Shown here piece by piece: positions 43,101 to 49,100 of a DNA stretch of 64,000 bases. The stretch comes from Octopus sinensis (taxonomy: Eukaryota), in contig NC_043014.1 in NCBI RefSeq assembly GCF_006345805.1, forward strand, positions 14,508,001 through 14,572,000. The letters are read 5' to 3'. Made by a program: the position numbers and the translations under genes. Positions within the stretch are counted from its first letter, which is position 1. Each line of letters opens with the position of its first letter. The notes under the pieces were generated by a model. The model saw nothing but the letters and a program-made list of their open reading frames with translations, was not told the origin of the DNA and made no database searches.

Positions 43101-46100
43101 TTATGATTTGAAATATTAGATTCCTATCTCTCTATCCTGAAGATAAAGCCTGAATTTACCCAACGTTTTTATGGTTCCACTGTTGGTTGCATATCCTTGA
43201 CTTTTGCGAACTACATCTGCCAATACTATGACATAATTCTAAGCCCCCAGAAACAGCTGTCAGACCTGTAATAACATATCTTCTTCCCTTAATTTTTTTT
43301 GTCTTTCTACTCTGTGTAAGCCTGCCCTGTAAATATATAAATATTTATATATTTATACATAAATGCTCATTATCTGAATATTTTCATTGCTTTCTATCTA
43401 TTTACATGTCTCTTTACTCTTTTACTTATTTCAGTCATTTGACTGTGGCCATGCTGGAGCACCACATTTAGTCAAGCAAATCAACTCCAGGACTTATTCT
43501 TTGGAAGTCTAGTACTTATCTACAGGTCTCTTTTGCTGAACATCTAAGTTATGGGGACGTAAACACACCACCATCGGTTGTTAAGTGGTCGGGAGACAAA
43601 CACAGACAAACATATACACACACATACATATGCAATAAGCTTGGTCCTTATTCTATCAGTCTCTTTTGCTGAACCATTAAGTTACGGGGACATAAGCACA
43701 CTAAAATCGATTGTCAAGCAAAGTTGAGGGGGACAAACACAGACACACAAACATATACATACATATATGATGGGCTTCTTTCAGTTTCCATCTACTAAAT
43801 CCACTCACAAGGCTTTGATTGGTCCGAGGCTATAGTAGAAGACATTTGCCCAAGGTGCCATGCAGTGGGACTGAACCTGGAACCATGTGGTTGGGGAGCA
43901 AGTTACTTACCACACAGCCATGCCTGTGCCTATGAAAAGTCATATGCTCACAGAGGGACACAAACCCGAGACCCTCAGATTACTTCTAAGGTTGACCTAT
44001 AAAAGTCTTATGCGCTACCAACATACATATATGTGTGTGTGTGTGCATATATATGTAGATATATATATGTGTGTGTATACATATATACTCTTTTATTTGT
44101 TTCAGTCATTTGACTGTGACCATGCTGGAGCACCACCTTTAGTCAAGCAAATAGACCTCAGGACTTATTCTTTGTAAGCCTAGTACTTATTCTATCAGTC
44201 TCTTTTGCCAAACCACTATGTTATGGGGATGTAAACACACCACCATCAGTTGTCAAGCGATGTTGGGTGACAAATACAGACACACAAACATATATATATA
44301 TATATATATATATATATATATATATATAAGGACTGGTAACCATTACAATTTGTAGCGGCGAAAGGTCTGGACGTTGTTTTCTGAGGCTGACCAAAGAATT
44401 TTTATTTTTAGATATAAGTGATGTACTCAAGTGTAGTTATGTTTTTAGCTTGTGCTTTTTCCATGATCATACGTGAGTATTTTATTTATATCCCATCGAA
44501 AGTTCTACTGAAGAAGGAATATATCTTTTTTTATAAGATTAAGTCCGAAATTGATTCAATATAGAGATAACGAAATTTAAATTTTCTAAAGGTTAGTTGC
44601 CCGTTTTCAGTTTCAATTTTCCTGTAACAAGCGGATTATAAGTGGATAAAACAGTGTATTTGGCTTTAGAATAACCCTCTTTAGCCCTTAATTATATGAT
44701 GTATATTGCAACCGTAACGGTTTTTTTAAATATACTGCCCACACTTCCTGATGAATTCCTTTGCTGTAGAGTAAGGGACTTCATCCTATATTGCTTAGTA
44801 GTAAACTCGATGCTTGCTACAGGAGGACTGGTAACCATTACAATTTGTAGCGGCGAAAGGTCTGGACGTTGTTTTCTGAGGCTGACCAAAGAATTTTTAT
44901 TTTTAGATATAAGTGATGTACTCAAGTGTAGTTATGTTTTTAGCTTGTGCTTTTTCCATGATCATACGTGAGTATTTTATTTATATCCCATCGAAAGTTC
45001 TACTGAAGAAGGAATATATCTTTTTTTATAGGATTAAGTCCGAAATTGATTCAATATAGAGATAACGAAATTTAAATTTTCTAAAGGTTAGTTGCCCGTT
45101 TTCAGTTTCAATTTTCCTGTAACAAGCGGATTATAAGTGGATAAAACAGTGTATTTGGCTTTAGAATAACCCTCTTTAGCCCTTAATTATATGATGTATA
45201 TTGCAACCGTAACGGTTTTTTTAAATATACTGCCCACGCTTCCTGATGAATTCCTTTGCTGTAGAGTAAGGGACTTCATCCTATATTGCTTAGTAGTAAA
45301 CTCGATGCTTGCTACAGGAGGACTGGTAACCATTACAATTTGTAGCGGCGAAAGGTCTGGACGTTGTTTTCTGAGGCTGACCAAAGAATTTTTATTTTTA
45401 GATATAAGTGATGTACTCAAGTGTAGTTATGTTTTTAGCTTGTGCTTTTTCCATGATCATACGTGAGTATTTTATTTATATCCCATCGAAAGTTCTACTG
45501 AAGAAGGAATATATCTTTTTTTATAAGATTAAGTCCGAAATTGATTCAATATAGAGATAACGAAATTTAAATTTTCTAAAGGTTAGTTGCCCGTTTTCAG
45601 TTTCAATTTTCCTGTAACAAGCGGATTATAAGTGGATAAAACAGTGTATTTGGCTTTAGAATAACCCTCTTTAGCCCTTAATTATATGATGTATATTGCA
45701 ACCGTAACGGTTTTTTTAAATATACTGCCCACGCTTCCTGATGAATTCCTTTGCTGTAGAGTAAGGGACTTCATCCTATATTGCTTAGTAGTAAACTCGA
45801 TGCTTGCTACAGGAGGACTGGTAACCATTACAATTTGTAGCGGCGAAAGGTCTGGACGTTGTTTTCTGAGGCTGACCAAAGAATTTTTATTTTTAGATAT
45901 AAGTGATGTACTCAAGTGTAGTTATGTTTTTAGCTTGTGCTTTTTCCATGATCATACGTGAGTATTTTATTTATATCCCATCGAAAGTTCTACTGAAGAA
46001 GGAATATATCTTTTTTTATAAGATTAAGTCCGAATTGATTCAATATAGAGATAACGAAATTTAAATTTTCTAAAGGTTAGTTGCCCGTTTTCAGTTTCAA

Positions 46101-49100
46101 TTTTCCTGTAACAAGCGGATTATAGTGGATAAAACAGTGTATTTGGCTTTAGAATAACCCTCTTTAGCCCTTAATTATATGATGTATATTGCAACCGTAA
46201 CGGTTTTTTTAAATATACTGCCCACGCTTCCTGATGAATTCCTTTGCTGTAGAGTAAGGGACTTCATCCTATATTGCTTAGTAGTAAACTCGATGCTTGC
46301 TACAGGAGGACTGGTAACCATTACAATTTGTAGCGGCGAAAGGTCTGGACGTTGTTTTCTGAGGCTGACCAAAGAATTTTTATTTTTAGATATAAGTGAT
46401 GTACTCAAGTGTAGTTATGTTTTTAGCTTGTGCTTTTTCCATGATCATACGTGAGTATTTTATTTATATCCCATCGAAAGTTCTACTGAAGAAGGAATAT
46501 ATCTTTTTTTATAAGATTAAGTCCGAAATTGATTCAATATAGAGATAACGAAATTTAAATTTTCTAAAGGTTAGTTGCCCGTTTTCAGTTTCAATTTTCC
46601 TGTAACAAGCGGATTATAAGTGGATAAAACAGTGTATTTGGCTTTAGAATAACCCTCTTTAGCCCTTAATTATATGATGTATATTGCAACCGTAACGGTT
46701 TTTTTAAATATACTGCCCACGCTTCCTGATGAATTCCTTTGCTGTAGAGTAAGGGACTTCATCCTATATTGCTTAGTAGTAAACTCGATGCTTGCTACAG
46801 GAGGACTGGTAACCATTACAATTTGTAGCGGCGAAAGGTCTGGACGTTGTTTTCTGAGGCTGACCAAAGAATTTTTATTTTTAGATATAAGTGATGTACT
46901 CAAGTGTAGTTATGTTTTTAGCTTGTGCTTTTTCCATGATCATACGTGAGTATTTTATTTATATCCCATCGAAAGTTCTACTGAAGAAGGAATATATCTT
47001 TTTTTATAAGATTAAGTCCGAAATTGATTCAATATAGAGATAACGAAATTTAAATTTTCTAAAGGTTAGTTGCCCGTTTTCAGTTTCAATTTTCCTGTAA
47101 CAAGCGGATTATAAGTGGATAAAACAGTGTATTTGGCTTTAGAATAACCCTCTTTAGCCCTTAATTATATGATATATATATATATATGTATATATATATA
47201 TACATATATATACATATACATATACATATATACGATGGGCTTCTTTCAGTTTCCATCTACCAAATCCACTCACAAGACTTTGGTCGGCCCGAGACTATAG
47301 TAGAAGACACTTGCCCAAAGTGCCCGGAACCATGTGGTTGGTAAGGAAGCTACCTATGACCCAGCCACTCCTGCGCCTATCTATATATATGTGTGTGTGT
47401 GTACGTGTGTGTGTGTATATATATATATATATATATATCTACTGCTGTGCTTGAGGAGACCTATTGAGTCAAGTACATCAACATCAAAATAAAAATCAAA
47501 TGGAAATTGTAGTTGTGATACTCGTGCTGGTGGCACGTAAAAAGCACCATCCAAATGTGGCCAATGCCAGTGCCACCTTAACTGGCATCCATGCCGGTGA
47601 CACGTAAACAGCACCAACTGATCATGGCCATTTGCCAGCCTCCTGTGCTGGTAGCACGTAAAAAAGCACCCACTACACTCATGGAGTGGTTGGCGTTAGG
47701 AAGGACATCCAGCTGTAGAAACACTGCCAGATCAGACTGGAGCCTGGTGCAACGATGATGATGATGATATATATATGTATATATGTATATATATAATATA
47801 TATATATATATATATATATATATATATATATATATATACACACATATATATAGGACTGAAGTACTTACCACCATACTTTTAGTGATTTCTTTCAGTGCAG
47901 CATCTGCTTGGGATTGCTTCTCAACCAAAAGCTGGCTTTGAGTGGCTGCTTTTGCCTTCAGTTCAGCAACTAACTCCTTAGCCTCGTTCAGCTTGGACAC
48001 ACCAGCCTAGAGATACAAAAGGAAAACAAGATATTAAAAAGAAAAAACACAAAAAAATTGCTATTGCTGAGTTGTAAGATCAACTCTATAACACCTTGAT
48101 TATCAATCTTTTAGTTTTTTAATCTTGTATTTTTAACTTGTTTCGGTCGGTGGAATGTGGCCATGCTGGGACTTCACTTTAAGTTTTGTTGAACAAATCA
48201 ATCCTATTTGATATTTTTTAAGTCAAATTCTTATTCGAACAGTCCCCTTTATTGAATCACTAAGTTATAGGGATGTAAACAAACCAACATCAATGATGGT
48301 GGTGGAGACAAAGACATATACAAAGACACACATATACAAACATACATACACATCTGCATGTATATGTAGAGACAAATCTAAATCTCTAAGACAGGAGCAT
48401 GGTATATCTTCCATTGTTTCTGAAGCATGGTTGTAACAGATATCAAATGTTAAATCGGAGCTGTGGAAGGAAAATTTGAATCCAGATATAACAACCATCT
48501 TTTGTCTGGTGTGCTAATGATTCTGCCAGCTTGCCGCCTTCACAATTCCTAAGAATATTCAATCACGTAAGGCAGCAAGCTGACAGAATTGTTAGCATGC
48601 TGGGAAAAATGCTTAGCAGTATTTCATCTGTCTTTACATTCTGAGTTCAAATTCCACTGAGGTCGACTTTACCTTTCATGATTGATAAAGGATCAGTTGA
48701 ACATTGGGGTCAATGTAATTGACTTACACCCTTAATCCAAACTAGTTGGCCCTGTACCAAAATCCAAAACCAATAATATTCAAGTATGAAAATATAAAAG
48801 GGTTTTATTTCACCATCAGATGACTAGGGGTAATAAAACAGGAATCAAAAGAGTCTATAGGTAAAAATGGTTGAGAAACACTGATATAGAGGTCCCCCCC
48901 CCCGTGTTGTGTGTACCTGTAAGTGCTGGATCTGCTGTGCAACCTTCTCCTTCTTCTGCTGATAGACAGACAAGTAGGTGTTGAGGAAGGCAATGTAACG
49001 TCTTGGAGTGGCACTCAACTCGTGACATGCTTCATGGATCTGCAAGAATGCCTTGAAGGGGTGATCCTTTCCAGAGTGGGAGTGACGCTGGCTGCGCTGG

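Follow-up and report, generated by a model that had tools for sequence, protein, structure and literature searches.

Knowledge of animal retrozymes dates from 2020, and that of their satellite hammerheads from 1987; the questions that occupy the field are which enzyme mobilises these elements and how their arrays arise. In this study we focus on a tandem array of a 495-bp non-coding unit, found at positions 44329-47179 on the + strand of a 64,000-nucleotide stretch of the Octopus sinensis genome (NCBI RefSeq assembly GCF_006345805.1, contig NC_043014.1, positions 14,508,001 to 14,572,000; hereafter the window), whose units carry a candidate type I hammerhead ribozyme. The metazoan retrozymes described so far, which have no long terminal repeats (non-LTR retrozymes), are non-coding tandem repeats of low GC content with one type I hammerhead per unit, and they give rise to abundant, self-paired circular RNAs (circRNAs) (PMC7229834; review PMC7761336). 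Species-specific families are present in many invertebrate phyla, molluscs included (PMC7229834); that of the mussel Mytilus galloprovincialis is built of 350-390-bp repeats (PMC7229834; PMC7761336). The consensus lengths of retrozymes range from 51 to 972 bp, 75% of the families count no more than seven units, and some 43% of the Xenopus copies lie in introns (10.64898/2026.07.22.740005). As for their mobilisation, the repeats show no motif indicating a partner according to a 2020 review (PMC7761336), while the 2026 preprint of Li, Clavereau and Pollet derives retrozymes from the pseudo-LTRs that Penelope-like elements (PLEs) carry, on the basis of sequence similarity in frogs (10.64898/2026.07.22.740005). 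In the literature searched, neither hammerheads nor retrozymes are described from octopus or any other cephalopod.

Judged from its sequence, the array is probably a copy of a non-autonomous, non-coding animal non-LTR retrozyme with a hammerhead of the PLE type. An initial annotation of this DNA had already read it as a ribozyme retroelement, which is probably right in kind given the rare motif, the strand-specific RNA fold and the insertion, in a single block, into a (TA)n tract; what it said about the size of the unit and about exotic features of the motif did not stand. What the locus mainly adds is an integration both clean and very recent, which suggests a microsatellite-targeting mechanism like that of PLEs.

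The array and its hammerhead motif

The limits of the array were set by Tandem Repeats Finder (TRF), by anchoring of the units and by BLAST of the unit against the window. TRF reports one array (period 495, 5.8 copies, 99% matches, score 5667), and the anchored units start at 44329, 44824, 45319, 45814, 46307 and 46802, all of them head-to-tail and none inverted. The complete units measure 495 bp, except unit 4 with 493 bp, and the last unit ends early, at unit position 372-378, in a TA-rich stretch of the unit. The copies are at least 99.4% identical. Only four differences are found in the whole array, every one private to a single copy: an A-to-G substitution at unit position 208 in copy 2, the loss of one A at position 220 and of another at position 312 in copy 4, and in copy 1 an A at position 415 where the other copies have G. 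The initial count of 5.75 head-to-tail copies with about four differences is thus borne out, at 5.76 copies; the remark that the monomer is larger than known metazoan ones has to be corrected, since it falls within the published consensus lengths.

The unit has a GC content of 33.5% and shows no sign of coding capacity. Indeed, its longest open reading frame (ORF) spans only 91 aa and has no match in a homologue search of 15 billion proteins, and the exact look-up of three unit ORFs in a protein collection gave no match either. A tRNA scan returned none, the unit being without tRNA-like part or tRNA-derived head. Furthermore, the array has no LTR, primer binding site (PBS) or polypurine tract (PPT), and no terminal repeats apart from the units themselves.

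The hammerhead motif of copy 1 lies at 44503-44566 on the + strand. Its predicted helix I is formed by 44503-44507 and 44562-44566 (5 bp, one of them G-U), and the core positions C3 to A9 read CUGAAGA (44508-44514). A44515 follows, unpaired, between A9 and G10.1. Helix II comprises GGA (44516-44518) paired with UCC (44544-44546), a 4x4 internal loop, AUCUU (44523-44527) paired with AAGAU (44535-44539), and a 7-nt loop, after which G12, A13 and A14 occupy 44547-44549. Helix III is made of the A15.1-U16.1 pair and of UUG/CAA (44550-44553 with 44557-44560) closed by the loop AUU; H17 is A44561, and an AUA triplet precedes the predicted cut at 44561/44562.

The motif was searched for with a descriptor made of CUGANGA, zero or one extra nucleotide, helix II of at least 3 bp, GAAA, helix III of at least 4 bp closed by A15.1-U16.1, an H17 other than G, and helix I of at least 5 bp. 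Five of the six units match, all on the + strand: copy 1, copy 2 (44998-45061, predicted cut 45056/45057), copy 3 (45493-45556, 45551/45552), copy 5 (46481-46544, 46539/46540) and copy 6 (46976-47039, 47034/47035). Their H17 residues fall at 44561, 45056, 45551, 46539 and 47034, exactly where the initial annotation had placed the cuts, and its description of type I order, both catalytic boxes and three closed helices agrees with the descriptor in these five copies. It had also claimed a complete hammerhead in every copy, which does not extend to copy 4 (45988-46050, expected cut after 46045): this copy fails the descriptor because one lost A shortens GAAA to GAA, leaving it without either A14 or the A15.1-U16.1 pair.

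Such a motif is rare. No further match was found on either strand of the 64 kb (128 kb of strands), even with the helix lengths relaxed to 3/2/2 bp. In simulated first-order Markov sequence (3 x 20 Mb, with the composition of the window or of the monomer), the observed stringency yields 0-1 matches per 20 Mb, that is at most 0.05 per Mb, and the chance expectation for one 495-nt unit is about 2.5e-5 per strand; the loosest descriptor setting yields 1-3 matches per Mb.

The hammerheads of PLEs described by Cervera and de la Pena (2014) have an enlarged helix II, 4-5 bp in helix I and a small palindromic helix III, and they act as dimers with low activity in vitro (PMC4209133). The motif of the array has the 5-bp helix I, a helix II of 3+5 bp with its 4x4 internal loop, the unpaired A44515 and a small, near-palindromic helix III, and by analogy these four traits match the published PLE hammerheads. 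All bases of the helix III segment AUUGAUUCAAU but the central one belong to a palindrome: as a lone hairpin the segment is computed at 0 kcal/mol, and a duplex of two copies (10 bp, one U-U mismatch) at -8.7 kcal/mol, energies that would fit a dimeric mode of the ribozyme.

Other natural hammerheads tolerate similar variation. For the extra A, the initial annotation had pointed to the active hammerhead of CChMVd, and the literature agrees: CChMVd(+) carries an extra A10 between A9 and G10.1 and cleaves at a rate only moderately lowered (PMC1636495, PMC3705267). The AUA cleavage triplet is known from ELVd(+), sCYDV-RPV(+) and cscRNA(-), and the helix II of sCYDV-RPV(+) is long and interrupted (PMC1636495, PMC3705267). 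With these, every departure of the motif from a textbook hammerhead has a published natural precedent. Moreover, the extra A and the long stem II, which had been taken as unusual, are better regarded as usual traits of PLE-associated hammerheads (PMC4209133).

The region also gives weak matches to other Rfam families (mir-297-like on an AT tract, U6 and snoRNA-like), which we set aside as chance or low-complexity matches. Among these, positions 44523-44567 (+) resemble the 5' stem and ACAGAGA box of U6 snRNA (14.8 bits, E 0.1 in a 91-nt search), a resemblance judged to be due to chance because nothing U6-like follows.

Predicted RNA structure of the unit

Folding of the unit from cut to cut (44562-45056) gave, for the + strand, -133.8 kcal/mol against -103.5 +/- 5.6 kcal/mol for shuffled sequences (z -5.41, none of 100 shuffles equally stable; z -4.78 with independent shuffles). 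The complementary strand gave -93.6 kcal/mol (z -1.42; -1.79 with independent shuffles), and 26 control segment-strands of 495 nt from the window ranged from z -2.66 to +1.87. Folded as a circle, the + unit is 64% paired with 26 G-U pairs, compared with 10 G-U pairs in the complement; retrozyme circRNAs have been described as 'highly self-paired' (PMC7229834). In these predictions the hammerhead strand is the one with an outlying, G-U-dependent RNA structure, for which there is no reason in a satellite that exists as DNA only.

The strongest local element is a strand-specific RNA hairpin at 44411-44492 (+), a short way 5' of the hammerhead, which was found by folding and as inverted repeat I1 and recurs in every unit at +495 nt. 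Its arms pair over about 31 bp with several G-U pairs, below a 20-nt top, and its minimum free energy (MFE) of -31.1 kcal/mol was reached by none of 200 shuffles (z -7.29); in 130-nt windows at this place, z is -5.28 on the + strand and -2.38 on the - strand. Further stems are predicted at 44750-44785, together with a long-range pairing of 44621-44632 with 44812-44823.

The hairpin gives most of the local structure signal, with a strand specificity that comes from its G-U pairs, and the hammerhead region has no fold signal of its own. This would suit a structured non-coding RNA (ncRNA) gene, clustered in tandem, whose functional part is the hairpin, be it a hairpin RNA, a small-RNA precursor or similar, the hammerhead being incidental. 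We hold this to be quite improbable, because no Rfam family matches the hairpin and its ~31-bp arms with a 20-nt top exceed a typical animal pre-miRNA, which is smaller. Furthermore, an array diverged by 0.2% within the microsatellite of a repeat looks like a mobile-element event and not like a conserved gene, the complete hammerhead motif would be left unexplained, and the long-range pairing outside the hairpin adds to the structure too.

Insertion site, origin and surroundings of the array

At both ends the array abuts a microsatellite. The first base of the array directly follows an (AT)19.5 tract (44290-44328), and its truncated last unit is directly followed by an imperfect (TA)n tract (47180-47232); perfect (AT)n tracts with n of at least 5 make up 1.6% of the window. 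The right junction lies in the TA-rich stretch of the unit (TATATGAT/GTATAT), where microhomology of up to about 6 nt is possible. Beyond the two tracts lie the left half (44086-44289, +) and the right half (47233-47381, +) of a split repeat resembling a short interspersed nuclear element (SINE), which were recognised by BLAST against uninterrupted copies and by alignment across the empty site. This SINE-like repeat of about 400 bp has at least six further copies in the window, and in these the left half leads through a (CA)n(TA)n microsatellite to the right half: 7472-7866 (-), 8337-8723 (-), 12718-13085 (+), 52597-52965 (+), 57657-57974 (+) and 59107-59523 (+). In these paralogues the two halves are joined through the microsatellite, and the array has therefore been inserted into the (TA)n tract, apparently as one block. 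The sequence of the SINE-like repeat had no literal match in the papers searched.

How the array ends tells something about how it came. Its first base is unit position 1 and its last lies near position 375, so that unit positions 379-495 occur only between copies, and therefore the block seems to have arrived as a multimer and not to have grown from a resident single unit. The private, star-like variants and the out-of-phase ends fit a single multimeric insertion better than a stepwise duplication in place. Arbitrary end phases are the expectation for a cDNA longer than one unit, and in the retrozyme model such cDNAs are expected from a circular template. Duplication in place and a transposon with terminal inverted repeats had also been considered, and were rejected in view of the end structure and the unit phase.

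PLEs are reported to prefer microsatellites, (TA)n in the case of the Naiads, which hides their target-site duplications (PMC8557442). A target-site duplication was looked for here as well and is not discernible within the microsatellite. The (CA)n(TA)n tract varies from about 10 to 80 bp among the paralogues, and the longer combined tract at the array is thus uninformative.

The insertion site of Helitrons lies between A and T, and these transposons are able to form tandem arrays or to carry them. A satellite borne by a Helitron-type or other DNA transposon and inserted at an AT dinucleotide would suit the position of the array inside (AT)n, as well as a small hairpin (AACCG-TAA-CGGTT) near the unit position at which the array ends. 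The ends themselves make this origin very hard to credit: they read AGGACTGG... and ...TTATATGAT on the + strand, ATCATATAA... and ...CCAGTCCT on the - strand, and in neither orientation do the array ends or the unit junctions show 5'-TC/3'-CTRR termini. There are no terminal inverted repeats and no inverted copies, and the array ends at arbitrary unit phases.

A more serious rival takes the array for a common minisatellite or satellite block of young age that was brought in as DNA, for instance a rolling-circle-amplified extrachromosomal circle caught at a broken (AT)n fragile site, in which a hammerhead-like string arose by chance and neither ribozyme nor retrotransposition plays a part. A number of observations weigh against the retrozyme, and several of them speak for this rival. 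The initial annotation had proposed a check with Rfam hammerhead models, and these are silent: the hammerhead families of Rfam 15 (types I, II and III, HH9 and HH10) gave no match at the gathering score over the whole window, nor at E<=10 with 1021 nt or 91 nt. This silence is explained by the fact that hammerhead variants of the PLE type are known to escape canonical descriptors (PMC8557442, PMC4209133). The helices are AU-rich and at the minimum lengths of the descriptor, and a chance motif would look alike. The 81-nt hammerhead region folds no better than its shuffles (z -0.35), and its minimum-energy fold swaps helix III for other pairing. In copy 1 the hammerhead-constrained fold reaches -8.2 kcal/mol and the MFE is -11.5 kcal/mol; for copy 2 the values are -7.9 and -13.1 kcal/mol, which places a single hammerhead 3.3-5.2 kcal/mol above the local MFE. 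The only informative stem substitution of the array, the A-to-G change of copy 2 at 45031, turns a U-A pair of the upper helix II into U-G and keeps the pairing, which is too little for covariation.

Other points concern relatives and opportunity. BLAST found no second locus of the 495-bp unit in the 64-kb window, and the hammerhead pattern and 22-23-mers of the unit had no match in two metagenome collections, a viral one and one of prokaryote genomes, collections in which this animal genome is hardly to be looked for, so that the lack of matches carries little weight. The window contains no PLE either, its sole reverse transcriptase (RT) belonging to an APE-type long interspersed nuclear element (LINE). 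Screening a whole genome could turn up about 0.2-1 chance motif within some tandem-repeat family, as extrapolated from the simulation. Finally, (AT)n tracts are fragile as well, and end joining can trap DNA at such sites; multimeric ends at arbitrary phases with TA microhomology at the right junction are equally expected for captured concatemeric DNA.

We nevertheless consider the DNA satellite unlikely. It would require a motif with the low chance rate given above for one unit strand, and this motif would have to fall on the strand with the outlying fold (z of about -5, the complement having -1.4 to -1.8) and to coincide, in its very oddities, with the PLE hammerhead class.

The retrozyme that we favour would have reached this site as follows. 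Transcription of a source locus on the + strand would give a multimeric RNA, which type I hammerheads would cut after A17 of AUA (44561/44562 and equivalent positions), two neighbouring motifs probably pairing through an extended helix III. A host ligase of the tRNA type may then close the unit RNAs into a highly self-paired circRNA. An RT acting in trans, most plausibly that of a PLE with a GIY-YIG endonuclease nicking the (TA)n tract, would circle this template several times, or copy a multimer, and so produce a cDNA of 5.76 units with arbitrary start and end phases. We infer transcription, cleavage, circularisation and the identity of the RT and endonuclease, as well as the existence of a dispersed family.

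The array could go further and represent an undescribed retrozyme lineage, possibly a cephalopod one: a 495-nt circRNA in which a hammerhead in the style of PLEs, with its A10 bulge, interrupted helix II and dimer-prone helix III, is combined with a 31-bp G-U-rich hairpin, the element being caught almost directly after its integration. We put this forward tentatively, as a possibility that we rate below even. If true, the empty site, the (TA)n target and the block of 5.76 units would be direct genomic evidence for rolling-circle reverse transcription of retrozyme circles and for a PLE-like, microsatellite-targeting endonuclease.

For the two questions of the field, the locus offers a different kind of clue, namely a nearly mutation-free insertion in a (TA)n target with paralogous empty sites, whose out-of-phase multimeric ends fit the PLE-type integration of a cDNA longer than the unit. 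Should copies across the genome share this target and a conserved hammerhead, retrozymes would be extended to another invertebrate lineage, and a well-defined, recently active element would become available for the study of cleavage, circularisation and mobilisation. For annotation, 2.85 kb of an intron are accounted for, and Rfam scans are seen to miss hammerheads of the PLE type.

This intron belongs to a gene on the minus strand, whose exon-bearing ORFs match dynein AAA_8 and stalk domains. The best solved-structure match of the exons is human DYNC2H1 (4rh7/6rla, E 1e-44; next dynein class 1e-22), and a dynein exon matches proteins at up to 77% identity. The downstream exon ORF, in the dynein stalk (42562-42837, -; Pfam MT domain and ORF list), bounds the intron at low coordinates, and the upstream exon, in the stalk coiled coil (approximately 47872-48000, -, within the ORF 47578-48000), at high coordinates. 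The array fills 2.85 kb of the ~5-kb intron between these exons, near 42.6-42.8 and 47.9-48.0 kb. With the exons on the minus strand and the motif on the + strand, the ribozyme strand is antisense to DYNC2H1, as the initial annotation had stated. A long, nearly perfect (GA)79 microsatellite (57047-57203) also lies in a DYNC2H1 intron.

Several other repeats were noted in the window. The LINE mentioned above is a non-LTR remnant at 36617-39097 (+), in which a 513-aa ORF (RVT_1) precedes a 264-aa ORF that holds a PHD finger; its best database identities are 50-62%, and it was assigned to the APE type and not to the Penelope-like elements because its homologues carry an Exo_endo_phos (APE) domain. 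An ORF fragment of a DDE_3 (Tc1/mariner-type) transposase is found at 20359-20841 (+). A 5S rRNA match at 21737-21857 (+; 79.9 bits, gathering score 38) is flush with an (AT)n tract (21695-21736). Its first ~97 nt are unique, and from nt 98 on to about 22040 it is an interspersed repeat with at least 15 copies in the window; being unique over ~97 nt only, it looks like a 5S fragment, a retro-copy or a chimera beside a SINE and not like a 5S gene cluster. Short arrays of a 62-67-bp repeat (GTGGCACGTAAAAAGCACCATCCG...) at 8793-9036, 20756-21253, 24749-24956, 28167-28359 and 39436-39552 are apparently the internal tandem region of another interspersed element. A 184-bp unit in two tandem copies, 91% identical (51736-52103), holds a string resembling a tRNA T-arm (GAGTTCAAATTCCGCC) and is possibly a tRNA-derived SINE dimer.

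Comparison with known hammerhead-bearing repeats

The hammerheads of newt satellite 2, Schistosoma Sm-alpha and cave-cricket pDo500 are, like those of the array, carried by tandem genomic repeats and have type I topology with a weak helix III. These satellites are transcribed into self-cleaving RNAs of unit length, and their cleavage depends on dimers. They differ from the array by a compact helix II, conserved contacts between loops 1 and 2, thousands of copies and experimental data.

With the CChMVd(+) and sCYDV-RPV(+) hammerheads the motif of the array shares the extra A, the AUA triplet and the long interrupted helix II (PMC1636495, PMC3705267). However, those motifs are of type III and belong to replicating plant circular RNAs without a genomic DNA copy, and the resemblance is best read, by analogy, as tolerated variation of the core and not as relatedness. 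The plant LTR retrozyme, with type III hammerheads in two LTRs, a PBS, a PPT and 4-bp duplications, was rejected as a candidate on account of the type I topology and the absence of an LTR architecture.

The likeness to PLEs is closer. It concerns the motif, with its short helix I (5 bp, compared with 4-5 bp), its enlarged helix II and a near-palindromic helix III that would favour a dimer, and it concerns the insertion into a microsatellite (PMC8557442). The motif differs from PLE hammerheads in having a helix III of 4 bp with a 3-nt loop, which is absent in PLEs, and a helix II broken by the 4x4 internal loop. Unlike in PLEs, no RT/GIY-YIG ORF lies between the repeats, and the 495-bp units are directly adjacent instead of ~3 kb apart; an autonomous PLE was rejected on these grounds.

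The metazoan non-LTR retrozymes remain the nearest known system. Two differences are to be noted: the unit of 495 bp is longer than those of the invertebrate retrozymes of 2020 (170-400 nt), and the hammerhead, with its unpaired A and interrupted 3+5-bp helix II, is not of the 'canonical' loop-loop type recognised by Rfam. In common with metazoan retrozymes, the array is made of head-to-tail, low-GC repeats of a few hundred bp without ORF, LTR, PBS or PPT, and each unit has a single type I hammerhead, confined to one strand, in an RNA predicted to be highly self-paired. Its sequence is species-specific, and its 5.76 units, their length and GC content and its intronic site are all within the published ranges. 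Thus, as far as sequence comparison goes, and with recognition by the Rfam models as the sole exception, the array fits retrozymes in every feature examined.

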